Below, piece after piece: positions 2,152-31,810 of a stretch of 32,000 nt of DNA. The stretch covers positions 512,190 to 544,189 of the forward strand of contig NW_008806278.1 of NCBI RefSeq assembly GCF_000400465.1. The letters are read 5' to 3'. The position numbers and the translations under genes are program-made. Below the pieces are notes generated by a model, which was not told the origin of the DNA, did no database searches, and saw only the letters and a program-made list of their open reading frames with translations. Numbering within the stretch: position 1 is the stretch's first letter; each line of letters starts with the position of its first letter. This stretch comes from Wallemia ichthyophaga EXF-994. Its lineage: Eukaryota > Fungi > Basidiomycota.

Positions 2152-2234
2152 ATTACAGCACATTTACATTTGCACATATAATGAGATGAGATGACTATAG
2201 AATCTATCACTTTTATTTATACTATAATGCCTGC

Positions 2235-3611
2235 TTATATTCTCGTGTTTATCCGTCTCAAAAGGGTGGCAGCCGAGAAGAGGGCAAACGCCACAGCGGC
2301 AACGGCGAGGGGTTTTCTGAGAGCATTGAAGAGGGAGAGTGAGTAAACGATTGTGACGTCGCCGTTGTGCGCATCAGAAGTGTTGTGCTTGGAGAGTACG
2401 ACGGTGTTTCTGCCGATGGTATCGAGGTACGAGGTCGTAGTTTCGTACTGCACATCCACCTCGAATGGAACGTACACGCTGTGTACCTGAGCACCCTCGG
2501 GAAGAATGATGCGAGTGGTGTGCCTGTCGACGGCAACATCCTCGGGAGTGCTGCTGAATGGGATGCTCAATCTGGTTGTACCGTCGCGAGCCAGCTTAGC
2601 AGCAAACCTCAGGCTATTCTCCCAGCCGATACTGAACGAGTATTTCCACCCGCCCATCAGTGGATAGCGTGGCTTGAGCTGTAAGAGGGAGTGCGAGGAG
2701 TGACCATCGCCCTGCTTGTAGTGGCTAGTAGTGACATTGCCGATCTGGTCAACGAAGAAAACTTCCTCAGAGAGCGCTGGTAGGCGGACACTAAGCATTG
2801 TGGCGATATTCGTGGGCAACACGTTCAAAAAGGTCTGGGCTTGATGGGTTAGACGCGTGAACTGGCCTTTGAGAGAAGGACCGTTGTTGCGCACGACGAT
2901 ATCGTCTCTAAAGCTCACCACATTCCCCCAGTGACTGACCTGGGCACTCCTCTCACTCACCTCATACTTCAATCTCGGGCCAGCAGCTTCGTAGAGTATC
3001 TCAATGTGGTCTGTAGGGATTGAGTAGGGAGCTACGTCCATCCACGGCCCATATACCATACTACCGCCGTTCTTGGTCGTCTTGCTGTCGTCATGCGTCA
3101 TGCCATATCGGTGTATTTTGGAGGTGGGTGCGCGCACTTTAACGCGCATTTCGTTAGTGTGATACGGGGTAACGACGTGTGTGTATGTCTTGAAGGAGAG
3201 TGAGTAGGCGAGGTCGTCCTGGGTGAGCTGGGATGGTAGTGGAGTGCTTGGGTTGTTGAGAGAGATAGAGAGTACTAGAGTGAGCTGTGGTGTGTTGGGT
3301 GGGAGTTGAACTGCGAGCCTCTTGAAATTATAGGGTTGAACATATGAATCACCGTTCAACCACGTGTAGGGGAGTTGTTCGCCGGATTCTTTGAGAGAGA
3401 CGGAGAGATGAGACAGCTGATCAAACTCATTAGGGCTAATGAGAATGTCGTATGTACCGTCATCCACCCCGCTAACGTGATAAGTAGTGGTTGAGTGTGC
3501 AGTTGAGTGGAATAGCTTTGTGGATTTAACTATATTATCATTTACAGTTGCTGCTAATGCTGAAATATTAACAAATAATATTAACCCCAACACGCTCAAC
3601 AGATTATTCAT
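2235..3611 (-). CDS. OST1: Oligosaccharyltransferase subunit 1 (ribophorin I)
   Basis: 458-aa single ORF with a hydrophobic signal peptide, ribophorin I motifs (VSHWGN, LKGQFTR, DQIGNVTTS, PRYPLMGGWKYSF, RIILPEGA, TSYLDTIGR) and a C-terminal TM segment. Confidence 0.93.
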   Translation of the reverse strand: MNNLLSVLGLILFVNISALAATVNDNIVKSTKLFHSTAHSTTTYHVSGVDDGTYDILISPNEFDQLSHLSVSLKESGEQLPYTWLNGDSYVQPYNFKRLAVQLPPNTPQLTLVLSISLNNPSTPLPSQLTQDDLAYSLSFKTYTHVVTPYHTNEMRVKVRAPTSKIHRYGMTHDDSKTTKNGGSMVYGPWMDVAPYSIPTDHIEILYEAAGPRLKYEVSERSAQVSHWGNVVSFRDDIVVRNNGPSLKGQFTRLTHQAQTFLNVLPTNIATMLSVRLPALSEEVFFVDQIGNVTTSHYKQGDGHSSHSLLQLKPRYPLMGGWKYSFSIGWENSLRFAAKLARDGTTRLSIPFSSTPEDVAVDRHTTRIILPEGAQVHSVYVPFEVDVQYETTTSYLDTIGRNTVVLSKHNTSDAHNGDVTIVYSLSLFNALRKPLAVAAVAFALFSAATLLRRINTRI

Positions 3612-3662
3612 GCTCGTCGTTTAAATTATAGCTGTGAATTCCCCTCTCACTCCTAAACAACC

Positions 3663-5682
3663 ATGTGTGAGTTGGTAGACATACGCGTTAATTGCTCAAC
3701 TCATTGGAATTTTCAGCAGGATTCTCATTTGGCGGTAATAGTGCGGGTGCATTTGGTGGAGGCCAGCAGCAGCAGCAGCAGCAACCACAGCAACAACAAC
3801 AGGGATTCAGCTTCGGTGCACAACCACCATCACAACCACAATCAAATACACCAGCAAAGCCATCTCTCTTTGGCAACCAGGGATCCACCACTCCAGCTGC
3901 ACCCCCACCAGCAAACAACACCTTCTCCTTCGGTAACAGCCAGTCAACCACCCCATCATCTGGCTTTGGTGGTTTCAGTGGCTTCGGTAAGCCAGCAGAA
4001 AATCCAAGCACGCCTGGTGCAGGTGGTAGTGGTGGTTTGTTCGGTGGAAACGCAGGTGGTAGCGCATTCGGCAGCACACAACCATCCTCACAACCTTCAT
4101 CAACCACCCCTTCCACTACTCCAGCTGCCCCTTCTTCTGGTGGTTTCAACTTGGGTGCTATGGGTTTTGGTAATACCCCCAAACCAGAGGAAAAGAAGGA
4201 GGCACCTAAACCAGGTGGTTTTACTTTCGGTGGTCTTGGAATGGGAAGCAAGCCCGGTGAGTTGCGCGCTATACACATTAAATACTCTTCTCACTCTCTA
4301 CTCTCGCAGAGGAGAAGAAAGATGACGCGCCTAAACCTAGCTTGTTCGGTGGTGGAGCTTTTGGTAAGCCTGAAGAGAAGAAGGAGGAGAGCAAGCCATC
4401 AGGTAGTGGAGGCGGTGGTTTCTCTTTCGGCAGCGGCGGCTTCGGCAAGCCAGACGAGAAGAAGGATGATGCACCAAAACCTGCGCCCAGTGGTGGATTC
4501 TCCTTGAGTGGTTCTGATAAGGGCAAAGACAAAGAAAAAGAGAAGGATGATACATCCAAACCAGCCGGTGGATTTGGATTTGGAGGTCTCGGTGGACTAG
4601 GCGCACCTAAACCTGCAGAGGCACCTAAACCTGCTACTTCTGGTGGATTTACATTTGGTGGTGCCCCTGCCAAGCCCTCTGAAGAGAAAAAGGACGATGC
4701 AGCTAAGGCGTCGAATCCATCACAGTCCAACCCCTCACAACCTGCCAAACCAACTGGTGGATTTTCGTTCGGCGGTACACCTGCCAAACCCACTGAAGAG
4801 AAGAAGGACGACGCGGCTAAACCGGCTGCACCTGCCGCACCTGCACCTGGTGGATTCTCTTCATTCAAACTCGGCGGAGAGAACAAAGACGCAGATAAGG
4901 AAAAGGAGAAAGAAACAAAAGATCCACTCTCAGTGAGTGCACTAGGGAAATCCACACCAGGCAATTCCACAACCACAAGCAACGCCGTTAAAGCATCACC
5001 CACGCCATCACTCCTGCGCAACAAAACGCTCGACGAAATCACTCATCGCTGGACAGGCGAACTCGAAACCCAGCAGAAGGATTTCAACAAGATAGGTCAC
5101 GAGGTAAAAGCGTGGGATGGGGTACTACGTCAGAATGCAGAGCAAATATCGCGTATATACAACCAAACAGTACAAGCTGAGCAGACTCAGCTGGGTGTTG
5201 ACCAATCGCTCGACTACATAGAAGCTCAGCAGCGTGAACTCGACGTCGTGCTAACCAGGTATGAGAAAGAGACGGAGGAGCTGCTCGATGGTGGAGAGAA
5301 CGTTGGCTTAGGTGTTGGTGTGGCTGATAACGAACGCACCAAATCTTACACTCTTGCTGAGACGGTCAACGATGAACTCGATGACCTCAGCAGAAATCTG
5401 TCGACTATGATCGACGAAATTAATCTCCTCTCAGGCGGCGTTGGAGCTAAAGAGGAAACTACTAAACAGGAGGATGTGATTGGACAGATCGCTGCTATAC
5501 TTAATGCTCACCTTAGCTCCCTTCAATGGATAGATGGCACGTCTAACAACCTCGTCGAGAGAGTCAAAGAGCTCGATGGTGTTGTTGGAGGTATTCAAAC
5601 CAAGAAGGAGTATGACGGTGGATTGAATAAGAGTAGCAATGCGTTACCGAGAAGAGGAGGATTTGGCATGAGTTTGGTGTAA
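3663..5682 (+). CDS. NSP1: FG-nucleoporin Nsp1/Nup62
   Basis: Exons 3663-3666 (ATGT), 3717-4256 and 4310-5682; introns 3667-3716 and 4257-4309 (both GTGAGT...CAG). Spliced product begins MSGFSFGG, has many FSFG/FTFG repeats with KPEEKKDD spacers, and a C-terminal Nsp1_C coiled coil (LRNKTLDEITHRWTGELETQQKDF...WD..L..N...I). Confidence 0.93.
3763..3802 (+). repeat. (CAG)7/CAA poly-glutamine microsatellite within NSP1
   Basis: cagcagcagcagcagcagcagcaaccacagcaacaacaacag encodes QQQQQQQQPQQQQQ. Confidence 0.85.
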
Positions 5683-5761: not shown

Positions 5762-6433
5762 TCAAAACATTGATTCATCCACAGGGATTTCAGCGAAAAG
5801 TGAGTAGTTGATTTGTTTCCATGGTTCTGTTGGTTCTAAACCTAGTTCTTCACCTTTTTCACCTTTTTTTTCACTTTCTTCTAAACCACCTTCCACAAGC
5901 CCTTCAACCAGCTCAGTCTCCGATTTAAGGGAAAATTCGTTGAGCTTGTTGTAGGTTGGTGAGCTGATGATGCTGTGAGAGGGGAGCGATGAGTGGGGTG
6001 ATGAGATGGGTGATGAAAGGTGTCGATGTTTAGTTGCCTTTACCGGTCTGTTTCCGCTAAGTGAATGTGAGACCGTATACTCACTATCGTCATCGCTCTG
6101 TTTCAGATTGCTTCTCTTTTTCGCCTTATTCGATGGTGCAAGGGGTAAAGGACTACTGAATACATCATCCTCAGTAAACTCCTGACAACTCCTAGCGTAC
6201 GACAAAGATTTAGTAGCAATGGTGAAAATTTTTGGTGTAGCAGGTGGATGTATGTGTGTATATAGCTGCTGTTGTTGTTGGATATCTTGGTTAGGTGAGG
6301 AGGTGGGTGTGTAGCGTTTAGAAGAGGAGCCTAGATGATTGAAGTGATTTGGATTGTTGTAGGGACTAATGAAGTGATTGTCAACTGCAGTTGAACGAGT
6401 TGGAGATAATTTCGGTGTTTTTGGTGGTTTCAT
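5762..6433 (-). CDS. Hypothetical Ser/Pro-rich low-complexity protein (223 aa)
   Basis: ATG-initiated 223-aa ORF filling the gap between NSP1 and the next gene; no recognisable domain; basic patch KAKKR. Confidence 0.6.
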   Translation of the reverse strand: MKPPKTPKLSPTRSTAVDNHFISPYNNPNHFNHLGSSSKRYTPTSSPNQDIQQQQQLYTHIHPPATPKIFTIATKSLSYARSCQEFTEDDVFSSPLPLAPSNKAKKRSNLKQSDDDSEYTVSHSLSGNRPVKATKHRHLSSPISSPHSSLPSHSIISSPTYNKLNEFSLKSETELVEGLVEGGLEESEKKGEKGEELGLEPTEPWKQINYSLFAEIPVDESMF

Positions 6434-10242: not shown

Positions 10243-13234
10243 CTAATTGTCTGCATCAAGACCTTGCGTTCTACCGTAGAGTCTGTAAACATCTCTGTCA
10301 GAGCGTTCGTGAACAATCGTGATTCTTTGGAGCTCATTCATAAAGTCTTCAACGCGTCTGTCGATCTTTCCTCTCTGTGTTCTGCCAATATTGTTGATTG
10401 CTTTCATGTTGTTCATGACAATGTATGCCAATGTGCAAACAATCATAACTGCGATAGAGAAACACCAAACCTTGACAACAGTGACAATGTCGGTATGACC
10501 GTTGTGATCTTCGTCATCAGAGTGGAACCAACCGAAGAGTGTGAAAATTGTAGCGAGAATATCAACACCAGCAATGGCACCAGTGAGTTGCCAAGATGGC
10601 CACTTGAACTCACCCTCGCCAGTTCTTGTCAAGAAAATTAACCAGTTCTCTGTGAGACAGACCTCCAAGAAAAGAATGTGCTGAATACCACCCCAGTTCT
10701 GAATAACACCTCCATTGTTGAGGAAGAGTGTACCTCTGAGAATCCAGGTACCAGCTGCCAAGATAATTCCGAGAACGGTTGACATGATCCAGATCTTTGG
10801 AAGTTGCCATTCAACTGGCTTGAGAGCGTATGGTGCGTTGTCATATGCAACAGCGACAGTAGCCAAATCAGCGAATAAGGCAATCCAGACAATCAAGTCT
10901 GCGCGGATGGTTTCGTTCATGATGATGATTGAGAGTGTGAGATATATTTCCAAGTGGAGACAGAGTGCAATACGGTAGACAATGTAAGCCTTCATGCGGT
11001 GGAAGATTTCACGAGCGACCTTGATAGCAGTAATGATAGTTGAAAGACCTTCATCGAGGAAAACGACAGCAGCAGCTGAACGAGCTGCATCGGAAGCACC
11101 TTCAACAGCGATACCACAGTCAGCCTTCTTGAGTGCAGGAGCGTCGTTGACACCATCACCAGTCATGGCTGTTAAGTGGCCACGGTGTTGGAGCATTTCA
11201 ACAATTTGGTACTTGTGTTCAGGGAAGACCTCACCGAAACCATCAGCGTTTTCAATAAAGTCGTGCATTTCAGAACCAGCCATTGAGCCACCGCCGATGA
11301 GTCTGTGTGAGTCGTATACCTGAGTTTTGTTAGCAAAAATGATAAGTGTCTCAGATGTGACTCACATTAGTACCCATACCAAGCATCTTGCAAGTCTCCT
11401 TAGCGATAGCGACAGCATCACCAGTCAACATTTTCACACCAACGCCGAGCTTGATAGCTTCACCGACGGTAGCAGCAGTGTCGTGACGTGGAGGATCGAA
11501 CATAGGGAGCAAACCGAGTACTTGCCAGTCACCATTGTTTTCTTGAACTGCAACACCAAGGGAACGGAAACCTCTTGAAGCGAATTCCATAGTTTGGTCG
11601 CGGAAGGCCTGAGCTGTTTGTGGTGGACATGCGCACATCTTGAGGATTGAGTTTGGAGCACCCTTAGCGCAAGTGTAAGTAATACCGTCACGCTCGACAA
11701 TTGAAGTAATACGCTTGGATACTGGGTCGAATGGTCTGAAATCCTTTGTTACCCAACCTGTCTTGAGCATTTCTGTTGCCTTTGGGTATTCCTTAAGAGT
11801 GGAAATGGTGATCTTGTCGATAGGGTCCAATGACTTAACGTTGTGAGATGAGGCGAGGGCAGCAACGCACATCATCCAATCCATGTCAACACCCTCGGCT
11901 GTGTATGGTTCGTGGATCGAGAGCTTGTTAGCGGTAAGAGTACCAGTCTTGTCTGAGCAGAGTATGTCACATCCAGCCAATGACTCGATTGAGGTGAGCT
12001 TCTGTACGATAGCTTGTCTCTTGGCGAGGTACGCGGCACCAACAGCGAGCGTAGTGGTGGTAACAACTGGTAAACCAACTGGAACACCAATAACAGCGAA
12101 GATAAGAGTGTAGACAAGCAAGTTGTTGTCTCTTGGTTGAGCAATCTCTACGTTCCGGAAGAAACAACCAATCCAGACGGCGAACAAGAAGACAATAACA
12201 AGAACGAGAAGAGTACCAGCGATAATGTTCATGACCTTGACAAAGTGACCCTTTTCGTTAGATCCGAGGACGAGTGCTGCTGTCTTACCAACGAAAGAGA
12301 TTGGTGCAGTCATCTTGACGCGTGCAAACACCTTGCCACGCTTGCAGATGGTGGTATAGAAAGCGATGTCACCGTGGTACTTGTCGACAGCGAGAGATTC
12401 ACCAGTGATAGCAGATTGGTCGGCGGCTAAGATGGATGGGCCTTTACCATAAGAGTCTTCTTCATCTTCCGTCTTTTCTTTCTTCGTCTCTGCCTTCACC
12501 TTTTCGAATACCTCTCTAGCTCTCGAGCCATCCTTGTCCTTGTAGTCTGCAAGCAACTCGCAGTCTGCTGGAATAGTAGAGCCTTCTTCGATGACGACAA
12601 TATCGCCAGGAACCAACATTCTTGCTTCGACTTCTTGTTCTTGTCCATCGCGAATGACGATAGTACGAAGAGCGATACCTTTTTTGAGCTGTGCTACAAT
12701 GTCACCAGCTTGCTTTTCTTGGTAGAAACCAACGAAAGCGTTGAGAAGGAGAATACCAATGATGACACCGAAGTCGACCCATTCACGAAGACCACCGGCA
12801 AGGGCGACGGCACCTTCCATAACATAGAGGACAGGGCCTCTAAAGAAACCAATAAATTTGAGTACCAAGTTCTCTTCTGGAGACTCTAACTCGTTGAAAC
12901 CGAACTGGCGACGACGTGGATCGACGTCACCTGAGCTGATACCATGTTTAATATCAGCATGCATCCAATCATCTGGCACTGATTTGCCTTGCTGTCTAAT
13001 TTCGATTTTCTTCCAAGGCGCATACCACGGCTAGTTTGTTGGTTAGTAAGTCATGTCTCAGTTTGTAATACCACTCACCCTCTTATACTCGATGTTGTCG
13101 TCTTGCACATCTTGAGCGTCGTCTGCTTTTCTCAACTCAACGTTGTGGATATAATCTACCAGCGCGTTGTATTCATGCTGCGGGCTATCCTCCTCTTCGT
13201 ATCTTGGTTGTTTTTCCCCGTCTAGGAATGACAT
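10243..13234 (-). CDS. PMA1: Plasma-membrane H+-ATPase (P-type IIIA), full length, about 965 aa
   Basis: Exons 13234-13079, 13030-11366 and 11319-10243; introns 13031-13078 and 11320-11365 (GTGAGT...AG with CTAAC). Motifs [54 protein letters not shown]. Confidence 0.97.
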
Positions 13235-13674
13235 AGCGAAAGAATTGTAGTTGGTGGGAGTTGATGGTCAAGCAGTCTTAGCCGCACTTGAAAGCTTCTG
13301 CCAAGTGATTTAGTGTGCTTTTGACTGGAATGTCATCCAAATTAGGAAAGTTGATTACCTCACTAAATCAAATCACCTTTGGTCGTTTAAGTAAATATTC
13401 ATTCTTCATTGACTAGTTTGTGTGATTTTATTGTGTTTTAAATCATGTGCTTTGCTTATCAGTACATCCTCGCGCGCAAATGCACGCCAAGTGGGGGCAT
13501 TTGACAGTTCATCAGCACAGCGGAATTTTCCAAAGGAAGAAGTAGAGCTGTCAAATGTATATCCTCGTCACGGTGATGAAATTCTAGTTGCGCGCTGTGC
13601 ACGTGCACTTGTACGAATTTTCTTTAATGATTTGCCAAATAAAAATTTATTCCTCTTCTATACAAATGTCCCAT
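13235..13674 (-). promoter_or_regulatory. PMA1 upstream region with two PacC/Rim101-type GCCAAG sites, a TGACAG inverted repeat and an E-box palindrome (copied at 18083-18522)
   Basis: GCCAAGTG at 13300-13307 and 13486-13493; CATTTGACAGTTC (13498-13510) / GAGCTGTCAAATG (13545-13557) inverted pair; GTGCACGTGCAC at 13597-13608. Function is inferred only. Confidence 0.4.
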
Positions 13675-15242
13675 TTACTGCCTCTTTATTGCATATGTGT
13701 AATGTAGCTCTTCAACAATTCTATATTTTGTTAGCGTCGTCTCTTTAGCAGCTCTTGCTATTATGTTATTGATATCAGGTTCATAGTAACCTCGTTTAAG
13801 GAAAATGGGTATAAATGATCTAAACAGGTTGAGTAGATCGTCTGCAAACAGATGCGCAACATGTCTATTAGGGAGCTTTGAGGTGTTTGTTAGCACTGTT
13901 ACTCCTGAAGAATCTCTCCACCCACATCAACCCCCGAGTACGCCGGCCATGCTCCAATACGAGCATGGAATACCTTGCTCTTTACTTCATCAAACTCCCC
14001 GGATGCTCTGACATAAGTCTCCAGCCTGTCACCGTCAAGCCCTGGGTCTAGACCTTTCTCAACAAACAATTGCTCTATCCAGGTAGCGAGAGTGCGGCAA
14101 CAAGGTCCAGCGGTCGTGGAGCGCGAAACAGTAGTCCACTTGGGTTCCATTAGTAGGAGCATTCCACCTGGCCTGAGAAGTGGGAGTGTGTCTTTAAGGA
14201 GCGCCGGGTAATCTTGTATAGCTGCATATAAACATCTAATTTGGATTGCATCGAAACTCTCTGGTTGATATGCCAATGTGAGATCTTTAGTGATATCGAC
14301 GCATCTATAGAAGCTGGTGCAAGTGTGAGAGGGTGTGGCGACGAAGAAAAGGTGAAGCCTACCAGTTCCTTGGTACTTGTCGTCTTTAGGAAGTGTGAGT
14401 AAAAAACACCCCAACTAAATCAACTAACTCACCCTTTTATTGGCGTGATGCATTGGATGTCATTGCCGTGAGTGCTGTAGGGTAATTTAGAGCAGTTCAA
14501 ATGAAAACAGCCTACCCACTCTGCTCCTGGGAACTGCTGAGCTAATTCCATTGCCCTGAAAGAGGATTATCAGTGTTGCTCTCTCTAAACCACACAAAAC
14601 ACACCAAATACCAGTCCCAGCACCCCAATCGCCGATGACACCCTTTTTTCCTGCTCGTGTAGTTCTTGAGACAACCTCACTAAGCGGACCCCACCAAAGG
14701 CCACCGATAATGAACTGCGCGAGGGCGTGACAGTTAGGAGGTTATGCGTTTGCGAGCCTAGGCAACCCACTTTAAACAGCTCATGCTCTCTATTCAGCCG
14801 CAAGTTCTCAGATTCACCTTGCGGGATCTGAGAAGCATTTAGAGTGTATCGTCGAGTACGCCCTCAAAACCCACAACATAAACTTTATCGTCGTATTTAA
14901 TATTTGCGAGGTCTATAGGATGCCTCCCGTTGAGCTTTTCGATCTCTAATAAGCCAAATGAGCCAGAATCCACGCTATTATATCCCACCCACCGTTATCG
15001 TTGTTGAGAGTCGTCTGACGGTAGCCAGCATCAATCGGTCTAAGCTGGTACTCGGGGTTGTACGGGAAAGACTGTTGTGCGGCCGTGGTAAGCGGTTCAG
15101 TTGCTGCCTTGTACTCGTTGTAGTAATACAGGCTCGGACTCTGTTGGACTTGCTTTGTGGAGGCTGATTGTATCTGGGCGAGTAGCGCACTGGCGTTGTT
15201 GATGTATTCCTTCTTGGTCTGCTCAGTTTGCTCTTCCATCAC
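13675..15242 (-). CDS. Class I SAM-dependent methyltransferase, LaeA-like family, copy A (391 aa, 9 exons)
   Basis: Exons 15242-14993, 14945-14875, 14827-14771, 14714-14605, 14555-14520, 14474-14433, 14383-14363, 14313-13926, 13875-13675. All 8 GT-AG introns are phase-compatible. Spliced product has ESENLRLNREHELFK, SAM motif I DWGAGTGIWAMELAQQFPGA, FDAIQIR and LLRPGGMLLLME. Confidence 0.85.
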
Positions 15243-15510
15243 TCGCTGAGCCTATTTCAACGTGGTGGTTCAAGAAGGAGTGATCCAAGAGAGGGGCGCC
15301 TGTTCATGTGCCTTCTATTTCATCCACACGATGCACGGGATTTTCACAAGGCTCACGCGGGGGGTGCACACCTCAACGCACATCTTTTCACATTTCGGAC
15401 AGGCACATAAGATAAGGCACAATGCTGTTTTTGGGTGTGTCTGTGTGTTTGCCTGTGCTTTCTGCTTTTGTCTATGTAATCTTTCATGTATGCATTATAC
15501 TACTGCCACT

Positions 15511-16354
15511 TCACGCGCCATCCGCCTGCTTCCTCTGTTTAACTCTCTGCGCCTTCTGTCTACTTTCTTCCAACTCTCTCCTGACCATCAAGCCCTCTGC
15601 TCCAGCTTCAGCGAGGAGATTGATAATAAGTTCACCCGCTCTCTCGCTGTCGTCGTTGGCGGGTATGGCATACGTGACACCCCTTGGATCACCGTCACTG
15701 TCCATCAATCCAACAGTCGGTACTCGAGTAAGAGCACACTCCCTCAGTGCGTGTGGATATGTCTGTGGATTACTGAACACAACCAAATCAGGAAGTGGTG
15801 GTGGTTGCTCTGGTTTTCCTCCTGGCAACAATCTGTAGCGATTAGTGAGCGTACCAGGCAGCCAGTTGTTCGGTACGCAGAACCCGTTACCCTCCAATTT
15901 CTCAGCTGCTCTCTCAGTTGCTCTCTTCACGATCGTAGTCCTCGTCTTGCCTCCAACGAAAAGAACGATGCCGTCACGCTCAACAACGCCTCTGACGACT
16001 GCTGCTGCTCTCCTAATGGCAACGAGTGTCTGCTCCAAGTCAATTATAGATTGTCCATGCCTTGTGCCGTAGATGTAAGGTCTCATTGAAGGATTCCACT
16101 CGCTGTGATTGTGTCCAAGGTGAGCACCTGCTGCTGTTAATGCACCAACTAAGCTGTCAATTGGCTGCTGTGACGTAGGCAGCCTCGTCTTCCATGGCTT
16201 GTAGGCGTTAGATGAGTTTTGCGTGGATCCCAAATGCTCGAGTGATTCGACTTTAAAATGGCTTGTTTAGATGATGATTGGAGTGAATTAAGCTATCTCA
16301 CCATTCTCTTTCTGGATTAACCGCTGCTTCAAGCTAAGCTCGTTGCTGTCGTGC
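15511..16354 (-). pseudogene. MRP4: 5'-truncated mitochondrial ribosomal protein uS2m, copy A, fused behind the PMA1 fragment
   Basis: Has the last exon (16250-15511), intron 16251-16301 and part of exon 2, but lacks the promoter, exon 1 and the first 32 codons, which are replaced by PMA1 sequence at 16355. Confidence 0.85.
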
Positions 16355-18082
16355 GAGCAAACCGAGTACTTGCCAGTCACCATTGTTTTCTTGAACTGCA
16401 ACACCAAGGGAACGGAAACCTCTTGAAGCGAATTCCATAGTTTGGTCGCGGAAGGCCTGAGCTGTTTGTGGTGGACATGCGCACATCTTGAGGATTGAGT
16501 TTGGAGCACCCTTAGCGCAAGTGTAAGTAATACCGTCACGCTCGACAATTGAAGTAATACGCTTGGATACTGGGTCGAATGGTCTGAAATCCTTTGTTAC
16601 CCAACCTGTCTTGAGCATTTCTGTTGCCTTTGGGTATTCCTTAAGAGTGGAAATGGTGATCTTGTCGATAGGGTCCAATGACTTAACGTTGTGAGATGAG
16701 GCGAGGGCAGCAACGCACATCATCCAATCCATGTCAACACCCTCGGCTGTGTATGGTTCGTGGATCGAGAGCTTGTTAGCGGTAAGAGTACCAGTCTTGT
16801 CTGAGCAGAGTATGTCACATCCAGCCAATGACTCGATTGAGGTGAGCTTCTGTACGATAGCTTGTCTCTTGGCGAGGTACGCGGCACCAACAGCGAGCGT
16901 AGTGGTGGTAACAACTGGTAAACCAACTGGAACACCAATAACAGCGAAGATAAGAGTGTAGACAAGCAAGTTGTTGTCTCTTGGTTGAGCAATCTCTACG
17001 TTCCGGAAGAAACAACCAATCCAGACGGCGAACAAGAAGACAATAACAAGAACGAGAAGAGTACCAGCGATAATGTTCATGACCTTGACAAAGTGACCCT
17101 TTTCGTTAGATCCGAGGACGAGTGCTGCTGTCTTACCAACGAAAGAGATTGGTGCAGTCATCTTGACGCGTGCAAACACCTTGCCACGCTTGCAGATGGT
17201 GGTATAGAAAGCGATGTCACCGTGGTACTTGTCGACAGCGAGAGATTCACCAGTGATAGCAGATTGGTCGGCGGCTAAGATGGATGGGCCTTTACCATAA
17301 GAGTCTTCTTCATCTTCCGTCTTTTCTTTCTTCGTCTCTGCCTTCACCTTTTCGAATACCTCTCTAGCTCTCGAGCCATCCTTGTCCTTGTAGTCTGCAA
17401 GCAACTCGCAGTCTGCTGGAATAGTAGAGCCTTCTTCGATGACGACAATATCGCCAGGAACCAACATTCTTGCTTCGACTTCTTGTTCTTGTCCATCGCG
17501 AATGACGATAGTACGAAGAGCGATACCTTTTTTGAGCTGTGCTACAATGTCACCAGCTTGCTTTTCTTGGTAGAAACCAACGAAAGCGTTGAGAAGGAGA
17601 ATACCAATGATGACACCGAAGTCGACCCATTCACGAAGACCACCGGCAAGGGCGACGGCACCTTCCATAACATAGAGGACAGGGCCTCTAAAGAAACCAA
17701 TAAATTTGAGTACCAAGTTCTCTTCTGGAGACTCTAACTCGTTGAAACCGAACTGGCGACGACGTGGATCGACGTCACCTGAGCTGATACCATGTTTAAT
17801 ATCAGCATGCATCCAATCATCTGGCACTGATTTGCCTTGCTGTCTAATTTCGATTTTCTTCCAAGGCGCATACCACGGCTAGTTTGTTGGTTAGTAAGTC
17901 ATGTCTCAGTTTGTAATACCACTCACCCTCTTATACTCGATGTTGTCGTCTTGCACATCTTGAGCGTCGTCTGCTTTTCTCAACTCAACGTTGTGGATAT
18001 AATCTACCAGCGCGTTGTATTCATGCTGCGGGCTATCCTCCTCTTCGTATCTTGGTTGTTTTTCCCCGTCTAGGAATGACAT
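16334..18082 (-). pseudogene. PMA1: 3'-truncated PMA1 copy (560 Pma1 residues + ARQQRA, stop)
   Basis: Exon 18082-17927, intron 17879-17926, exon 17878-16334. Identical to PMA1 up to ...WQVLGLL, then reads out of frame into MRP4 exon 2 and stops at TAG 16336-16334. Confidence 0.9.
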
Positions 18083-21000
18083 AGCGAAAGAATTGTAGTT
18101 GGTGGGAGTTGATGGTCAAGCAGTCTTAGCCGCACTTGAAAGCTTCTGCCAAGTGATTTAGTGTGCTTTTGACTGGAATGTCATCCAAATTAGGAAAGTT
18201 GATTACCTCACTAAATCAAATCACCTTTGGTCGTTTAAGTAAATATTCATTCTTCATTGACTAGTTTGTGTGATTTTATTGTGTTTTAAATCATGTGCTT
18301 TGCTTATCAGTACATCCTCGCGCGCAAATGCACGCCAAGTGGGGGCATTTGACAGTTCATCAGCACAGCGGAATTTTCCAAAGGAAGAAGTAGAGCTGTC
18401 AAATGTATATCCTCGTCACGGTGATGAAATTCTAGTTGCGCGCTGTGCACGTGCACTTGTACGAATTTTCTTTAATGATTTGCCAAATAAAAATTTATTC
18501 CTCTTCTATACAAATGTCCCATTTACTGCCTCTTTATTGCATATGTGTAATGTAGCTCTTCAACAATTCTATATTTTGTTAGCGTCGTCTCTTTAGCAGC
18601 TCTTGCTATTATGTTATTGATATCAGGTTCATAGTAACCTCGTTTAAGGAAAATGGGTATAAATGATCTAAACAGGTTGAGTAGATCGTCTGCAAACAGA
18701 TGCGCAACATGTCTATTAGGGAGCTTTGAGGTGTTTGTTAGCACTGTTACTCCTGAAGAATCTCTCCACCCACATCAACCCCCGAGTACGCCGGCCATGC
18801 TCCAATACGAGCATGGAATACCTTGCTCTTTACTTCATCAAACTCCCCGGATGCTCTGACATAAGTCTCCAGCCTGTCACCGTCAAGCCCTGGGTCTAGA
18901 CCTTTCTCAACAAACAATTGCTCTATCCAGGTAGCGAGAGTGCGGCAACAAGGTCCAGCGGTCGTGGAGCGCGAAACAGTAGTCCACTTGGGTTCCATTA
19001 GTAGGAGCATTCCACCTGGCCTGAGAAGTGGGAGTGTGTCTTTAAGGAGCGCCGGGTAATCTTGTATAGCTGCATATAAACATCTAATTTGGATTGCATC
19101 GAAACTCTCTGGTTGATATGCCAATGTGAGATCTTTAGTGATATCGACGCATCTATAGAAGCTGGTGCAAGTGTGAGAGGGTGTGGCGACGAAGAAAAGG
19201 TGAAGCCTACCAGTTCCTTGGTACTTGTCGTCTTTAGGAAGTGTGAGTAAAAAACACCCCAACTAAATCAACTAACTCACCCTTTTATTGGCGTGATGCA
19301 TTGGATGTCATTGCCGTGAGTGCTGTAGGGTAATTTAGAGCAGTTCAAATGAAAACAGCCTACCCACTCTGCTCCTGGGAACTGCTGAGCTAATTCCATT
19401 GCCCTGAAAGAGGATTATCAGTGTTGCTCTCTCTAAACCACACAAAACACACCAAATACCAGTCCCAGCACCCCAATCGCCGATGACACCCTTTTTTCCT
19501 GCTCGTGTAGTTCTTGAGACAACCTCACTAAGCGGACCCCACCAAAGGCCACCGATAATGAACTGCGCGAGGGCGTGACAGTTAGGAGGTTATGCGTTTG
19601 CGAGCCTAGGCAACCCACTTTAAACAGCTCATGCTCTCTATTCAGCCGCAAGTTCTCAGATTCACCTTGCGGGATCTGAGAAGCATTTAGAGTGTATCGT
19701 CGAGTACGCCCTCAAAACCCACAACATAAACTTTATCGTCGTATTTAATATTTGCGAGGTCTATAGGATGCCTCCCGTTGAGCTTTTCGATCTCTAATAA
19801 GCCAAATGAGCCAGAATCCACGCTATTATATCCCACCCACCGTTATCGTTGTTGAGAGTCGTCTGACGGTAGCCAGCATCAATCGGTCTAAGCTGGTACT
19901 CGGGGTTGTACGGGAAAGACTGTTGTGCGGCCGTGGTAAGCGGTTCAGTTGCTGCCTTGTACTCGTTGTAGTAATACAGGCTCGGACTCTGTTGGACTTG
20001 CTTTGTGGAGGCTGATTGTATCTGGGCGAGTAGCGCACTGGCGTTGTTGATGTATTCCTTCTTGGTCTGCTCAGTTTGCTCTTCCATCACTCGCTGAGCC
20101 TATTTCAACGTGGTGGTTCAAGAAGGAGTGATCCAAGAGAGGGGCGCCTGTTCATGTGCCTTCTATTTCATCCACACGATGCACGGGATTTTCACAAGGC
20201 TCACGCGGGGGGTGCACACCTCAACGCACATCTTTTCACATTTCGGACAGGCACATAAGATAAGGCACAATGCTGTTTTTGGGTGTGTCTGTGTGTTTGC
20301 CTGTGCTTTCTGCTTTTGTCTATGTAATCTTTCATGTATGCATTATACTACTGCCACTTCACGCGCCATCCGCCTGCTTCCTCTGTTTAACTCTCTGCGC
20401 CTTCTGTCTACTTTCTTCCAACTCTCTCCTGACCATCAAGCCCTCTGCTCCAGCTTCAGCGAGGAGATTGATAATAAGTTCACCCGCTCTCTCGCTGTCG
20501 TCGTTGGCGGGTATGGCATACGTGACACCCCTTGGATCACCGTCACTGTCCATCAATCCAACAGTCGGTACTCGAGTAAGAGCACACTCCCTCAGTGCGT
20601 GTGGATATGTCTGTGGATTACTGAACACAACCAAATCAGGAAGTGGTGGTGGTTGCTCTGGTTTTCCTCCTGGCAACAATCTGTAGCGATTAGTGAGCGT
20701 ACCAGGCAGCCAGTTGTTCGGTACGCAGAACCCGTTACCCTCCAATTTCTCAGCTGCTCTCTCAGTTGCTCTCTTCACGATCGTAGTCCTCGTCTTGCCT
20801 CCAACGAAAAGAACGATGCCGTCACGCTCAACAACGCCTCTGACGACTGCTGCTGCTCTCCTAATGGCAACGAGTGTCTGCTCCAAGTCAATTATAGATT
20901 GTCCATGCCTTGTGCCGTAGATGTAAGGTCTCATTGAAGGATTCCACTCGCTGTGATTGTGTCCAAGGTGAGCACCTGCTGCTGTTAATGCACCAACTAA

Positions 21001-21202
21001 GCTGTCAATTGGCTGCTGTGACGTAGGCAGCCTCGTCTTCCATGGCTTGTAGGCGTTAGATGAGTTTTGCGTGGATCCCAAATGCTCGAGTGATTCGACT
21101 TTAAAATGGCTTGTTTAGATGATGATTGGAGTGAATTAAGCTATCTCACCATTCTCTTTCTGGATTAACCGCTGCTTCAAGCTAAGCTCGTTGCTGTCGT
21201 GC
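16355..21202 (+). repeat. Tandem duplication unit B (4,848 bp)
   Basis: Right boundary: 16354=21202=C, then 16355=G versus 21203=T (mismatch). Junction reads ...gctgtcgtgc|gagcaaaccg... Confidence 0.95.
18523..20090 (-). CDS. Class I SAM-dependent methyltransferase, LaeA-like family, copy B
   Basis: Same exon structure as copy A shifted by +4848. Confidence 0.85.
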
Positions 21203-21343
21203 TCGAGTGTGCCATCTCTTGCATATACCACTGATCTTCTCGCAGAAGATGTAAACGTACGAGCTGTGCTGTGTTAGCTGATTCTGCTGAAATGATGGCC
21301 ATCTCTCACCTGCGACGCTGCCTCCGCGAACAATTCCCTTCAT
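20359..21343 (-). CDS. MRP4: Mitochondrial ribosomal protein uS2m, intact copy (295 aa)
   Basis: Exons 21343-21310, 21263-21150 and 21098-20359; introns 21264-21309 (GTGAGA...GCTAAC...CAG) and 21099-21149. Presequence MKGIVRGGSVAARTFTSSARR; S2 motifs AGAHLGH, WNPSMRPYIYG, GILLFVG-like GIVLFVG, WLPGTLTN, IPANDDS. Confidence 0.9.
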
Positions 21344-26229: not shown

Positions 26230-28225
26230 TTGAGAAGATTTTATCAGCCAGTATTTAATATACGCAGGATGTCCACACAACTACCTTTTATCCCAAACAC
26301 TGAGCCAGAGCGCTGTATCCTTGACAGCTACAAAGCAGCCTGTGCGGTTGAGCTGAACAAGTCGCTCGATTTGCCTTTAGAAAAGGCCTATGAAGGTGTA
26401 CACGTTGGCTCAAAGAATGGTGACTTCCATATTGCTCTTCCTCGCTTTAGACTGCCTGGTGACGTTAAAGAGCACGCTCAGAAGGTACATGACAACTTTA
26501 AGCCTAACGAGTACATTGAAAAGTGCACCGTTAAGCAGGGCTTTGTCACGTTTCAAGCTACCACTCAAAACTTTATTAGAAATGTCTTGGACCAGATTCA
26601 CTACATGTCCAACAAATCCCCATCAGGAAAGCCAGAGTATGGTACTTCAACCATTTCTGGTCAGGGCAAGCACGTCATTATTGAGTTCAGCTCTCCAAAC
26701 ATCGCTAAGCCTTTCCACGCAGGCCACTTGCGTTCAACTATTATCGGTGCCTTCTTGGCCAACTTATATGAAGCCTGTGGATGGAAGGTTACTCGTATGA
26801 ACTACTTGGGTGATTGGGGAAAGCAATTCGGTCTTCTGGGTGTTGGTTTTGAGCGTTATGGTAGCCAGGAGAAGCTCAAGGTTGACCCGATCGGTCATTT
26901 GTTTGAAGTGTATGTGCGTGTCAATAATGAGGCAAAGGAGGAGGACGAGAAGCTTGGTAAGAAGAGTCAAGATATTGAAGAGGGTGGTGATGAGCAAGAC
27001 TCAGCTCCGATAGAAGCAGGTAACACCATCAACGACCAAGCCAGACGCTTCTTTAAACGTATGGAAGATGGCGAGGAAGGTCCCCTTTCTCTCTGGAAGC
27101 AATTTAGAGATCTTTCCATTGAAAAGTACAAGGATACCTACGCACGCCTTAACATCCACTTCGACGTTTACTCCGGTGAATCTCAAATTTCCCAAGAAAA
27201 CCAAAACAAGGCCATTGATGTGTTGCATGAGAAGGGTCTCATCAAGCAATCAGGTCAGTCGCAAATTATCGACCTCGAAGAGTATAAGCTTGGTAAGGCT
27301 GTCGTTAAGAAAATGGACGGTACAACACTCTATTTGACGCGTGATTTCGCTGCAGCTGCTGAGCGTCATGAAAATTACCACTTTGACAAGATGATCTATG
27401 TTATTGCTTCTCAACAAGATCTTCACACTGCGCAATTGTTCAAGGCAATGGACTTGATTGGGTATGACTGGGCCAAGAACCTTCTTCACATTAACTTTGG
27501 TATGGTTATGGGTATGTCTACTCGTAAAGGAACTGCAGTCTTCCTCGATCAGATCCTCAACGAAGCTAAGAGTGTTATGCTTGATGTGATGAAGAAGGAT
27601 TCTATGAACAAGTACGATCAACTTGAAAATCCAGAATGGACTGCTGATACACTCGGTTTGAGTGCTGTTAAGATACAGGACATGGCTGGCCGTAGAATCA
27701 TGAACTACAAGTTTGCATGGGACCGTATGACTTCATTTGAAGGGTGGGTGGTGTTGTGAAAGAGTGATGCAATTTAACGCTCTCACAGTGACACAGGACC
27801 ATACCTCCAATACGCTCACGTCAGAATGTCATCCATTCAACGTAAAGTTGCTGACGAAACTGTGCTTCCTGAAGATCCAACCAAGGATGTTGACACCAAG
27901 CTTCTCACTGAACCAAAAGCCAGAGAGCTAGTTTATCTGTTATCACAGTACCCAGATGTCGTCAAGAATGCCCTCAAGACACATGAGCCAAATAACATTG
28001 TCTCATATGCTTTTCAACTAACCCATGTTGTATCTAGCTTGCTTGAAATGTTGAAGGTTAAAGGACAAGAAAAGAAACTGGCAGAAGCCCGTTTGTACTT
28101 GTTCATGAGTGCCAGAGACGGTGAGTGCTAGGGTTGCCCAACTGAGTTAAAAATAGCTGACAAATCGTGTAGTTCTTGGCAGTGCGATGCGCTTACTCAC
28201 TTTGACGCCATTAGAGAAGATGTAA
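26230..28225 (+). CDS. RRS1: Arginyl-tRNA synthetase (first ATG 26269; putative UUG start 26230)
   Basis: EFSSPNIAKPFHAGHLRST (HIGH), NYLGDWG, GTTLYLTRD, GMSTRKG, FEGDTGPYLQYAH, C-terminal PLEKM. Introns 27744-27788 and 28121-28172; stop TAA at 28225. Confidence 0.95.
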
Positions 28226-28438
28226 GGTTGATATAATATATTTTTATTTCCTTTTGCATGTTTTGGTCTTTTGTTTGAGAGTGACGTGTGCGAGGATGGC
28301 TAGAGCGGAAGGTGCCAGAAAACGGGGTTAAGAGGGAGGTAAAGCGCGTGCATATGTGGTATACAAAACATCTAAGAATAAAAAGTGCTTTTATCTTATT
28401 TCACTGTCCATATCACCACCTTGTCTTCTTACCACCAT

Positions 28439-31400
28439 ATGCCTAGAGATCGGAAGCGCACAAACTCAGGCTCAAGCGATCAAAAGCCCGTGAAGCCAGT
28501 TGGAAGCACATCTTCAACGCTCTATAACAACCAACCAGAAGGTTTGAAGAGCTATCATCCATCTCTGGTACCCCCAACAGCTGAAGAGGCTGCTAGATTA
28601 GCACACCAGACTCCCCCTCACACATCTCCCACAACCGTCGCAGACGCTGAAGGCTTGTACACGTACTCTACCAGTTTCAGGAAGGCATCTCTTGAAGCTA
28701 ACGCCCGCAAACCATCTCTCCCTCATTTGAAGCCTTCAGAGCTTCCAAGCCCATTCGATTCAGCTGCCGCAGAGAAGAAAGAAGACGACGATAGAAGAAA
28801 GGCTATGACACATTCTCTTGAGTCGGATCCTGCTCACACGTCAACGCCGTCAGCACAGTACGCAAAGCTATCAGTCGATGTGGGTGTTTTCTTTGGAGTG
28901 TGGACGCGCTATTGACTTTCTTTTTGCAGCAAACCATCGCTCGATTAAACACAAACCCTAAAGACGGATTGAGCTCTGCCGACGTGAAAGAATTGCGCCC
29001 TAGATACGGTTTTAATGAATTCTCGGTTGAAGCAGGTGACAGCTTATTCAAAAAGTTCTTCGAGCAGATTTACGAAAGTCCGCTGATCCTTCTCTTACTC
29101 GGTTCGGCCGTTGTCTCAGCTTTGGTTGGTAACGTAGACGATTCAATTAGTATATCTCTTGCAGTAATTATCGTTTTGACTGTTCAATTCGTCCAAGAAA
29201 CGCGCTCAGAGAAGTCTTTGCAAGCATTAAACAAGCTCGTTCCACACTACTGTCACTTGGTCAGAGGTGGCCAAAACTCATCACCGCTCGCCAACGACCT
29301 TATTCCAGGCGATGTCGTTACTTTCTCAACTGGCGACCGTATCCCTGCAGACGTTCGCATTATTGAGGCAGTTGACCTTGAGATCGACGAGAGCAACCTC
29401 ACAGGTGAAACCAAACCAACGAAGAAAACCACTGAGCAATCTGATTTGTTGAACGTCGGTGTTAGTGACCGCAAATGTATCGCACATATGGGAACCCTCG
29501 TTAGAAGTGGTCACGGTAGAGGTTTGGTTGTTGGTACTGGCTCCGAGACTGAATTTGGTGTTGTCTTTACTATGATGCAGGACGTTGAAGAGCGCCGCAC
29601 ACCTCTTCAATACTCAATGGACGAACTCGCTAAGCAGCTCTCTATCATCTCCTTTGCTGTTATCGGTGTTATATTCCTGATCGGTATTATTCAATCACGC
29701 AGCTGGCTCGAAATGTTCACAATAGGTGTTTCTCTCGCTGTCGCAGCTATTCCAGAAGGTCTTCCAGTTGTCACTACTGTCACTCTCGCACTCGGTGTTC
29801 TCCGTATGAGCAAGCGCAAGGCCATTGTCAAGAAGCTCCCATCTGTCGAGTCACTTGGCTCTGTTAGCGTTATTTGTTCAGATAAGACAGGTACCCTCAC
29901 AAAAAATATTATGACTGTCACCAAAGCATTCACAGTTCCAGATGGTCCTATTTCTATAGACGGCAAGCTCGATAAAATCAGCCCAGCCCTCGAACGTACA
30001 CTACTTATTGGAAACATTTGTAACAACGCAAGGAAGGATGAGCACGGTAAGAATGTTGGACAACCTACTGATGTAGCCCTTGTCGATGTTATTGAAGGGC
30101 AAGGTACAAATGATAAACGTACGTCATTTGTACGCCGTCATGAACAAGCATTCTCGTCAGAGTCCAAGGTTCAATTAGTCACCGGTACACTTGCTAGCGA
30201 TGCTGAGGGCAAACCACAAGAGTGCAACTACCTTAAAGGAGCATTGGAGAGAGTCTTGGAGCGTTGCGACAGCTACTTGACAGCATCTGGTCATCACACC
30301 GTCCGTCTCGACGATTCTACTCGCCAGCTCATCCTCTCAAGGGGTAATGAATGTGGTGACAAAGGATTGAGAAATATTGGTATGGCATACAGAATCAGCA
30401 GCAACATTTCAGATTTCACTAGTGGTTTCATATTTACAGGTTTTCAAGGTATGAAGGATCCACCAAGACCTGGCGTGGCTGCTTCCATCGCTTCATTGCA
30501 AAGAGCAGGTGTTCACGTTGTTATGATTACCGGTGACGCTGAGCGTACTGCACTTGCTATTGCTAGAGAGTTGGGCCTCTGTGTCAGACCAGCATCACCA
30601 AGCACCAACTCACGCAGAGATACGAGCGAGTGTCTCACTGGTTTGGAGCTGGATAACATGTCAGAGAGAGAGCTGATGGAGCGTATTAACAGTGTTAGTG
30701 TATTTGCTAGAACCTCACCAAAGCATAAGATGAGAATTATCGGAGTACTACAGAAGCTTGAGAAAGTCGTTGCGATGACGGGTGATGGTGTTAATGATGC
30801 ACCTGCTCTCAAGATGGCTGATATTGGTGTTAGTATGGGTAAAGGTGGTACAGACGTGGCCAAAGAGGCTGCTGATTGTATTCTCGTCGACGACAACTTT
30901 GCAACGCTTTTGCCAGCTGTTGAAGAAGGTACGGTTTGCTGGTTTGCTGCCTTTCATAAAACTCCTAACTAACAACCACTCCAGGAAAGAGTATTTTCTA
31001 CAACATACAAAATTTCCTCAGCTTCCAGCTTTCTACTGCCGTCGCTGCACTCAGCTTGATCACTATTTCCACAGCACTACGCATGCGCAACCCACTCAAT
31101 GCCATGCAGATTCTCTTCATCAACGTAATCATGGATGGACCACCATCACAGTCACTTGGTGTAGATCCAGTGAACAAGACGGTCATGAAGCGTCCACCTC
31201 GTCCAAAGAATGCGTCAGTCATTACCAACAGGCTCCTAACAAGAGTACTTTTCTCTGCTTCAATAATTATCACTGGTGTTCTTTTCATCTATGCTTACGA
31301 AATTGGAGACGGATTTTCAACTCGCGACCAGACAATGACTTTCACCGCGTTCGTTGTTTTGGACTTGGCCAGTGCGCTTCAAAACAGGGGAGTTACATGT

Positions 31401-31643
31401 GGATTCGGCGACAACAAGATGTTGCTTATAACTGTGGCAGTTTCATTCCTTGCGCAGATGTGCTTTGTCTACATCCCTACGCTTCAAGCTGTGTTCCAAA
31501 CGGAAGCACTTGCGTTGAGAGATATGGGTGTGCTTAGCTCACTCGTCCTCTTCTCTATCGGATTACACGAGATCAGAAGACGTTGGGAGAGAGAGCAAGA
31601 GAGGAAGGACGCGCTGTTCTCATTCTCGAATGACGACGTGTAG
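28439..31643 (+). CDS. PMR1: Golgi Ca2+/Mn2+ P-type ATPase (SPCA)
   Basis: Exons 28439-28879, 28930-30928 and 30985-31643; introns 28880-28929 and 30929-30984. Motifs [86 protein letters not shown]. Confidence 0.95.
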
Positions 31644-31810
31644 CTGTGTGTGTTTACGAAAGAATCCAAGTTTTTATTATTTCAAATTAAAATGATATTT
31701 GCATAAAATGTAGACAAGTTAAACAATGCTAATTTTGTAACCTGTAGTTTGATGTGATATCTGCCTGTACCGCACTGTCTTCTCAACTATCATCACCTCA
31801 GATACAGAAG

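Follow-up and report, generated by a model that had tools for sequence, protein, structure and literature searches.

A perfect 4,848-bp tandem repeat in the Wallemia ichthyophaga EXF-994 reference assembly, possibly an assembly artefact, with a broken PMA1 chimera at its junction

Tandem segmental duplications formed by end joining or at micro-homologies were reportedly characterized in yeasts by Koszul et al. in 2004 and Payen et al. in 2008; extrachromosomal circular DNA (eccDNA), such as the GAP1 circle of S. cerevisiae, is said to have been described by Gresham et al. in 2010 and Moller et al. in 2015; and false duplications in draft assemblies were reportedly documented by Kelley and Salzberg in 2010. 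The repeat analyzed here, from the reference assembly of Wallemia ichthyophaga EXF-994, resembles the yeast duplications in its head-to-tail layout, its size of a few kb, its arbitrary intragenic breakpoints with 0 to a few bp of homology, its junction chimera, and the intact genes on its flanks. However, evidence for the yeast duplications came from selection, PCR, Southern blot, or CGH, whereas the EXF-994 repeat is known from one short-read assembly and its relatives lack it. The junction of an eccDNA is identical to that of a tandem duplication, and the few-kb size is also alike; the GAP1 circle, in contrast, arises by recombination between flanking LTRs and has an ARS aboard, whereas the EXF-994 unit lacks flanking repeats and no origin was identified in it. 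With false (homotype) duplications, the repeat shares an identical copy found in one assembly only, an extra chimeric gene taken as a gene-family gain, and a short-read assembly of the same generation (PMC9516828). Most of those false duplications have N gaps or unsupported fill between the copies, and heterozygosity is often their cause (Ko et al. 2022, PMC9516828), whereas the EXF-994 copies are perfect and their join is free of Ns. The population study treated W. ichthyophaga as haploid in its variant calling.

The window, the whole stretch of DNA that was analyzed, is the final 32 kb of scaffold KE007228.1 of the EXF-994 reference. The public record is 100% identical to the window over both copies and the junction, and the window is thus unaltered. 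The repeat is laid out as follows:

11507..16354, no strand: duplication unit copy 1, 4,848 bp, which together with the left flank completes an intact PMA1 gene
16355..21202, no strand: duplication unit copy 2, 4,848 bp, which together with the right flank completes an intact MRP4 gene
16354..16355: novel junction, blunt, present in KE007228.1 and missing from all other assemblies examined

A unit-versus-unit comparison found 0 mismatches over the 4,848 bp (100% identity), in agreement with the coordinates and the perfect identity given in the preliminary description. The run of identity at a period of 4848 spans exactly 11507..16354 and breaks off at the very next base in both directions, where the flanking bases are G versus C before the unit and G versus T after it. 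A perfect repeat of 4.8 kb cannot have originated by chance. The record therefore contains two adjacent head-to-tail copies and one novel junction, GTCGTGC/GAGCAAA, for which CTCGTTGCTGTCGTGCGAGCAAACCGAGTACT would mark junction-containing reads. No N occurs in the 32-kb window, the junction included. The junction has zero microhomology, as had been claimed, since the flanking bases differ on both sides. A GAG at 21205-21207 had also been read as a possible 3-bp microhomology join that lost TC; the trinucleotide is present, but such a join is unnecessary, as a trinucleotide 2 nt away is a matter of chance.

Within ±150 nt of the two breakpoints, the longest k-mer common to both was 8 (null median 8-9), which leaves neither homology nor a cryptic repeat nor an overlap of K=21 there. 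A homology-mediated origin, whether by NAHR or by a K=21 graph mis-join at a common k-mer, was rejected because the breakpoints have nothing in common beyond chance. Dispersed repeats flanking the unit, terminal repeats, and tRNAs or repeat elements at the unit ends were likewise not found, and with tRNAs and terminal repeats absent, we also rejected the unit as a mobile element or as a tRNA-linked or repeat-bounded segment.

The genes and gene fragments at the locus, all on the minus strand, are:

10243..13234, minus: intact PMA1-type plasma-membrane H+-ATPase, 965 aa; exons 13234-13079, 13030-11366, and 11319-10243
13675..15239, minus: SAM-dependent methyltransferase gene copy 1, 390 aa (public annotation); Methyltransf_23/12/25/31
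15511..16354, minus: 5'-truncated MRP4 fragment, promoterless, with the first 141 nt of the gene missing
15511..18082, minus: public chimeric gene model, 805 aa; Cation_ATPase_N + E1-E2_ATPase + Ribosomal_S2
16334..18082, minus: 3'-truncated PMA1 copy, 566 aa by straight reading, with its own upstream region present
18523..20087, minus: methyltransferase gene copy 2 (L025 carries two 390-aa genes)
20359..21343, minus: intact MRP4 (mitochondrial ribosomal protein uS2m), 295 aa; exons 21343-21310, 21263-21150, and 21098-20359

The PMA1 exon model is the sole GT-AG solution that both fits the annotated span and yields the annotated length of 965 aa, and the protein carries the Pfam domains Cation_ATPase_N, E1-E2_ATPase, and Hydrolase. 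The MRP4 model carries Ribosomal_S2 and is 100% identical over its full length to P0121 (W. ichthyophaga; UniRef name 37S ribosomal protein mrp4). The left breakpoint, 11506/11507, lies in PMA1 exon 2, between ...VLGLL and PMFDPPR, and the right breakpoint, 21202/21203, lies in MRP4 exon 2, within a GAG codon. The exon models, Pfam domains, and P0121 match thus bear out the earlier naming of the two genes, and the reconstructed 965-aa and 295-aa models bear out the placement of both breakpoints in exon 2 with one intact copy of each gene on the flanks. To call them two essential genes, however, is an overstatement; according to the genome paper, another Pma paralogue (EOR00565) resides elsewhere in the genome. 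The methyltransferase gene is the only one duplicated whole. The MRP4 fragment is missing the start codon, exon 1, intron 1, and part of exon 2, and its reading frame differs from that of the upstream PMA1 piece.

Read straight through the junction, the truncated PMA1 copy encodes PMA1 residues 1-560 followed by ARQQRA and a stop. Like the fungal Pma1/Pma2 paralogues, it has the N-terminal region and the actuator domain, together with the first membrane segments and the phosphorylation motif CSDKTGT; unlike them, it ends at residue 560, before the C-terminal membrane segments, which it lacks. The public 805-aa model, present only in GCA_000400465.1, requires a 55-nt 'intron' (16362-16308) over the junction and then a 6-nt exon, the unique reconstruction of its exon structure. 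A complete P-type ATPase core, with the phosphorylation motif, TGD, the GDGVND hinge, and all membrane segments in one uninterrupted frame, is not found at the junction gene. Judged by its sequence, the junction gene is a broken chimera that cannot work as a pump and is not a third Pma paralogue, whether the duplication is real or an artefact. Three Pma proton pumps are attributed to W. ichthyophaga, versus two to W. sebi, both in the genome paper, which terms this an enrichment, and in a later review. EOR02128, the third 'Pma pump' of the genome paper, appears to be the junction chimera.

We then compared the locus across strains and species, using contiguous ORFs (ADIP, OST1, and a 223-aa ORF) and the MRP4 match P0121 for the look-ups. 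At least seven other W. ichthyophaga population assemblies hold a single copy, MRP4-MT-PMA1(965). Each of the five aligned population contigs (L020/L024, L022, L023, L026, and L027) gave one collinear match to the collapsed window at 99.6-99.99%, and strain SPOL01 shows no difference over the unit or either breakpoint, yet is single copy. The Logan contigs of SRR25394091 and SRR25394068 run across the breakpoints as a single copy, and W. mellicola, the sister species, has the identical single-copy gene order; the order at the single-copy locus is Dus, PMA1, methyltransferase, MRP4, and aldo-keto reductase. The repeat is missing from the population assemblies although these were guided by the EXF-994 reference (population study). 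It was thus seen in no independent assembly or isolate among these at least seven population assemblies, the two Logan samples, and W. mellicola, and it is private to one record, the comparators being other strains, as EXF-994 was not re-sequenced in the population study. The repeat occurs in one assembly only and is absent from the closest genotypes, with no second EXF-994 assembly in the collections searched: exact-ORF look-ups of within-unit sequences returned no EXF-994 contigs, no Logan assembly of EXF-994 was found, and a literature search found no long-read W. ichthyophaga assembly. Neither the 492-aa junction ORF, at which a k=31 graph would break contigs, nor the window's 191-aa MRP4 ORF is in the public gene-call index. 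A homologue search with the PMA1 exon gave, among the matches listed, none exceeding 72% identity and none from W. ichthyophaga or another Wallemia. The junction 32-mer and the ancestral 32-mer were both missing from the JGI metagenome contigs, a collection without this locus.

The 2013 EXF-994 reference is a SOAPdenovo 1.04 assembly (K=21) of Illumina reads from two libraries, one of 500 bp and one of 2 kb (genome paper). The perfect repeat of 4,848 bp exceeds the largest insert (500 and 2,000 bp), and thus any read pair (≤2 kb), so that the assembler cannot tell two tandem copies from three or more, or from one copy plus a circle. Inserts of ≤2 kb do not allow the copies of a perfect 4.85-kb repeat to be counted, and the layout with two copies reflects a choice by the assembler rather than something observed. 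Our leading reading, to which we give a probability of about 0.5, is that the second copy is an assembly artefact and, by inference, is not in the EXF-994 chromosome. The true chromosome would hold the locus once, as in all other assemblies; the SOAPdenovo and gap-closing pipeline would have put out one stretch of 4.85 kb two times and closed the seam between them; GeneMark-ES would have bridged the join by an invented intron, giving the 805-aa ATPase/ribosomal-S2 chimera; and the genome paper would have taken this chimera for a third Pma proton pump. Identity of 100% between the copies is expected if one sequence was written twice. False duplications, some of them on the same scaffold, occur at the percent level in assemblies of the same generation, including an Illumina short-read one, and have produced false gene gains (PMC9516828). 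The window also has a second discrepancy in repeat length, in favor of an artefact: the Nsp1 FG-repeat of the reference is two 81-bp units shorter than that of the near-identical strain SPOL01. Against an artefact, the usual behavior of De Bruijn assemblers is to collapse perfect repeats, not to expand them, and no specific SOAPdenovo or GapCloser step is nameable that would emit a 4.85-kb contig twice. Moreover, false duplications are mostly gap-separated (PMC9516828), unlike the EXF-994 copies, which have no N between them.

The N-free, overlap-free junction has a further bearing: in a k-mer pipeline, it usually means that junction-spanning reads existed, and it would point to a real tandem copy or a circle. 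A real, private, very recent tandem duplication in EXF-994, which could have arisen in the wild or over the roughly ten years in culture, is a serious if less favored possibility. Breaks in PMA1 exon 2 and MRP4 exon 2 would have been joined without homology, by unequal sister-chromatid end joining or a microhomology-free template switch, and an N-free junction without a common k-mer is what blunt end joining produces and implies junction-spanning k-mers in the reads. The zero divergence fits a very young event, and one intact copy of each broken gene remains, as is required of a viable tandem duplication. On the other side stand all the other strains without the repeat, one of them identical across the locus, and the oddity of the layout itself, as a short-read assembler with ≤2-kb inserts should collapse a perfect 4.85-kb repeat. 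Dominant-negative pma1 alleles are established in yeast, and on this basis a truncated polytopic Pma1 expressed from a strong promoter would be expected to be costly. In favor of a real event, the genome paper lists a Pol mu-like polymerase and RAD50, which belong to end joining, as present here and missing in W. sebi. A real duplication would have to be both very recent and private. The preliminary description, which had correctly named duplication, circle, and artefact as the alternatives, favored a recent NHEJ or circle event; its recency, if the event is real, is upheld by the other strains and the sister species, which lack the repeat, but nothing in the present analysis supports preferring it over an artefact.

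A single-copy chromosome accompanied by a 4,848-bp extrachromosomal circle, in the EXF-994 DNA preparation or in a sub-population of cells, would leave the same junction as a tandem duplication, and the two are inferred to be indistinguishable by short reads. In this case, junction reads would close a loop in the graph that the assembler unrolls into two tandem copies; in a variant, re-integration of the circle by homologous recombination would leave a sequence identical to that of a tandem duplication. A blunt join is in keeping with circles closed by end joining. Nevertheless, we consider a circle improbable: neither a replication origin nor a selectable gene was identified in the unit, and the unrolling of the loop by the assembler is still needed. 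A chimeric library molecule, either a mate-pair circularization junction or a PCR-amplified ligation chimera, could also have linked the end of the unit falsely to its start. Libraries of the 2-kb type are usually made by blunt circularization, which gives end-to-start joins without homology. The 2-kb library here was made from 20 μg of DNA (genome paper), a point in favor of such a molecule; the implied fragment of 4.85 kb, however, is far off the 2-kb size selection, and rare k-mers are normally pruned at >270x coverage, leaving this the least probable of the readings. Weighing these lines of evidence, we lean towards an assembly artefact over a private, very recent end-joined duplication, for which the odds are somewhat lower, or a circle, for which they are small.

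The published inference of Pma enrichment needs correction whether or not the duplication is real: EOR02128, which appears to be the chimera, lacks half of the enzyme, and the other strains examined have no third Pma gene at this locus. Two identical 4.85-kb copies make read mapping ambiguous over most of PMA1, the methyltransferase gene, and most of MRP4, and variant calls and expression values there are therefore unreliable, including those of the population study, which mapped to this reference. The locus illustrates in compact form how a short-read assembly that contains a perfect duplicate comes to show a gene-family 'expansion'. Tentatively, EXF-994 (CBS 113033), the type strain of the most halophilic known fungus, a non-pathogenic one, may instead truly carry a private, very young, homology-free tandem duplication, perhaps one that originated in high-salt culture or that is partly a 4.85-kb circle. 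This would be an ordinary but clean example of its kind, in which the SAM-methyltransferase is doubled, a truncated PMA1 (566 aa, non-functional, and probably degraded) is driven by a second copy of the PMA1 promoter, and the MRP4 fragment is dead. It would also show, in nature, gene birth and a change of gene dosage driven by end joining in a species deemed asexual by the genome paper.

Direct comparison of 11507-16354 with 16355-21202 showed that every base is identical across the 4,848 bp of each unit, as the preliminary description had proposed, and the period-4848 identity run in the window is exactly 11507-16354. Immediately before the unit, the left flank has G where the junction has C; immediately after it, the junction has G where the right flank has T. 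The join GTCGTGC/GAGCAAA is therefore base-exact with zero microhomology, again as originally described. The longest k-mer common to both ancestral breakpoints (±150 nt, either strand) is 8, compared to a median of 8-9 for site pairs 4,848 bp apart. Thus, the breakpoints are without homology of any kind, while the repeat itself far exceeds chance expectation. The 32 kb contained no ambiguous bases (N), no tRNA genes were found in it, and there were no repeats of note besides the 4,848-bp tandem. In the public record, KE007228.1 matches the window at 100% identity in the stretches that span both copies and the junction. The window represents the final 32 kb of this scaffold (positions 512190-544189; total length 544,189 bp; GCA_000400465.1). 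Position 32000 coincides exactly with the scaffold end at 544189, only 10.8 kb from the duplication; by coordinate arithmetic, contigs of other W. ichthyophaga strains extend approximately 1.2 kb further.

All genes inside the unit lie on the minus strand. The relevant features of the window are as follows:

2235-3611, minus strand, ribophorin I/OST1 ORF, single exon
about 3692-5682, plus strand, Nsp1-like FG-repeat nucleoporin gene (discrepancy at 4345-4466)
10243-13234, minus strand, PMA1, 965 aa (exons 13234-13079, 13030-11366, 11319-10243)
13675-15239, minus strand, SAM-dependent methyltransferase, 390 aa, copy 1, between PMA1 and MRP4
18523-20087, minus strand, SAM-dependent methyltransferase, copy 2
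20359-21343, minus strand, MRP4 (mitochondrial ribosomal protein uS2m), 295 aa (exons 21343-21310, 21263-21150, 21098-20359)

The PMA1 exon structure is the sole GT-AG model that matches the annotated span and length, and the MRP4 model matches the W. ichthyophaga database protein P0121 from end to end at 100% identity. These models place the breakpoints in exon 2 of both genes, where they had been expected: the left one falls in PMA1 between NNGDWQVLGLL and PMFDPPRHD, and the right one within a GAG codon of MRP4. Only the methyltransferase gene is duplicated in full. The exact protein of the ribophorin I/OST1 ORF occurs on KE007228.1 of GCA_000400465.1 and in a series of ~45-kb contigs of the GCA_0049xxxxx assemblies.

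The comparison with other isolates, suggested in the preliminary description, drew on assemblies from a population study in which 21 other strains were sequenced (BGISEQ PE150) and assembled by IDBA-Hybrid with the EXF-994 reference as a guide (PMC6738226). Besides the reference, seven population contigs encode the exact MRP4 protein (eight contigs in all), and each population contig displayed has MRP4 (295), the methyltransferase (390), PMA1 (965), and Dus in one copy. When aligned to the window with the second copy removed, L023, L024, and L026 each gave one collinear match of 20,985 bp and L027 aligned over 12,281 bp, with identities of 99.69-99.99%. Strain SPOL01 (L020/L024, GCA_004918415.1) has zero differences across the unit and both breakpoints; its differences are confined to the Nsp1 FG-repeat region (~4350-4460) on the left and 22372 on the right. 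Right of the Nsp1 repeats, it differs only by intergenic indels of 1 nt (G) at 22372 and 2 nt (TA) at 22393, which may be genuine or may be errors in the reference. A single copy is likewise present in L022 (GCA_004918235.1). Among the Logan contigs (k=31, from public read sets), a 13.2-kb contig of SRR25394091 extends from the right flank across one unit into the left flank, and a contig of SRR25394068 crosses the unit/right-flank boundary, both in the single-copy arrangement. The sister species W. mellicola has the same gene order in single copy. Taken together, these results indicate that single copy is the ancestral and species-wide state and that only the EXF-994 reference record carries the duplication.

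Perfect tandem repeats get collapsed by short-read assemblers. At a real junction, however, the assembly would show a branch at each end of the unit, and the comparator contigs pass straight through these ends, even with the repeat-containing reference as a guide; we infer that the comparator strains are truly single copy.

At the junction, the second PMA1 copy retains its own upstream region and reads straight to residue 560, followed by ARQQRA and a stop (566 aa). The truncated protein retains the CSDKTGT phosphorylation motif; both a 20-residue stretch (not spelled out here) and the C-terminal membrane segments are missing, and it thus cannot pump. Downstream of the junction, the MRP4 fragment is missing its first 141 nt and is not in frame. 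An 805-aa gene combining Cation_ATPase_N, E1-E2_ATPase, and Ribosomal_S2 domains is nevertheless annotated here in the public record. Its single possible reconstruction uses a 55-nt "intron" (16362-16308) across the junction, a 6-nt exon, and the genuine MRP4 intron; the chimera is a gene-finder construct. The reference genes were predicted by GeneMark-ES (PMC3849046). The genome paper counted three putative Pma pumps in W. ichthyophaga (EOR02126, EOR02128, and EOR00565) versus two in W. sebi (PMC3849046), and a 2014 review gives the same count of three (PMC4017127). The accession numbers EOR02126 and EOR02128 differ by two, matching the order PMA1 (965), methyltransferase, chimera (805), which suggests that the junction chimera is EOR02128, the "third Pma". 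The published third pump would then rest on an invented intron, making the result useful as a correction of the reference genome and of a gene-family claim.

The alternatives originally listed proved to be the right set. We consider it about an even bet (probability about 0.5) that the second copy is an assembly artefact. The reference was assembled from Illumina HiSeq libraries of 500 and 2,000 bp by SOAPdenovo 1.04 at K=21 (PMC3849046); since 2-kb inserts are far shorter than a perfect 4.85-kb repeat, a layout with two copies could not be measured from such data. An artefact is also favored by the identity of the copies, by the absence of the repeat from all relatives, and by false duplications, some on the same scaffold, occurring at the percent level in assemblies of that generation, including one from Illumina short reads (PMC9516828). 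A second repeat-length discrepancy in the window points the same way: the Nsp1 gene of the reference is two 81-bp units short relative to a near-identical strain. However, De Bruijn pipelines tend to collapse rather than expand repeats, and we cannot point to the particular step in the software at which the stretch would be written out twice. Moreover, the join has no N and no overlap, which usually means that junction-spanning k-mers were present among the reads. Such k-mers would come from a genuine tandem copy or a 4.85-kb circle, and less probably from a chimeric library molecule. A real, private, very recent end-joined duplication in EXF-994 is a serious but less probable reading; a circle or sub-population unrolled by the assembler is improbable, and a library chimera slightly more so. 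The population strains exclude EXF-994 itself (PMC6738226), searches for exact matches to ORFs inside the unit yielded no EXF-994 read-set assembly, and no long-read W. ichthyophaga assembly was found in the literature.

A real duplication would have arisen by homology-free joining of two sister-chromatid breaks 4.85 kb apart or by a template switch without microhomology, recently enough for zero substitutions over 2 x 4,848 bp. It would double the methyltransferase dose and yield a truncated membrane protein from a strongly promoted transcript with a long false 3' UTR, whose likely fate is mRNA and protein quality control. Nothing suggests a benefit; biologically, the duplication is either unreal or an ordinary young tandem duplication.

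In the Nsp1-like gene, the two units missing from the reference and present in SPOL01 are imperfect FG repeats (162 bp, 54 aa), and the annotated length is 638 aa in the reference versus 664-692 aa in other strains. The difference is either a genuine polymorphism in length or the result of repeat collapse in the K=21 short-read reference. An ORF at 5762-6433 (minus strand), serine/proline-rich and without a Pfam domain, is annotated with 223 aa in the reference and in part of the strains; in the others its model has 190 aa within the same span, presumably through splicing. At 26230-32000 (plus strand), a 1,648-aa reference model fuses arginyl-tRNA synthetase to a Pmr1-like Ca2+ P-type ATPase; in population assemblies (L023-L026, positions 1-5075) the fusion, at 1,987 aa, takes in porphobilinogen deaminase as well. 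In this very compact genome, neighboring gene models seem to be fused often, an error of the same type as the 805-aa chimera. Among the matches listed in a protein homologue search with PMA1 exon 2, none exceeded 72% identity, despite the 965-aa orthologues annotated in public assemblies of W. ichthyophaga and W. mellicola; for this query, near relatives appear to be missing or hidden. Several Logan runs from SRR25393946 to SRR25394091 (2023) contain W. ichthyophaga-like contigs (L001-L008) at 99.2-99.5% identity to the window; all population strains examined are closer. Their short length (1.5-13 kb) suggests low-abundance or mixed samples, and three contigs of different runs share a start at 12406.
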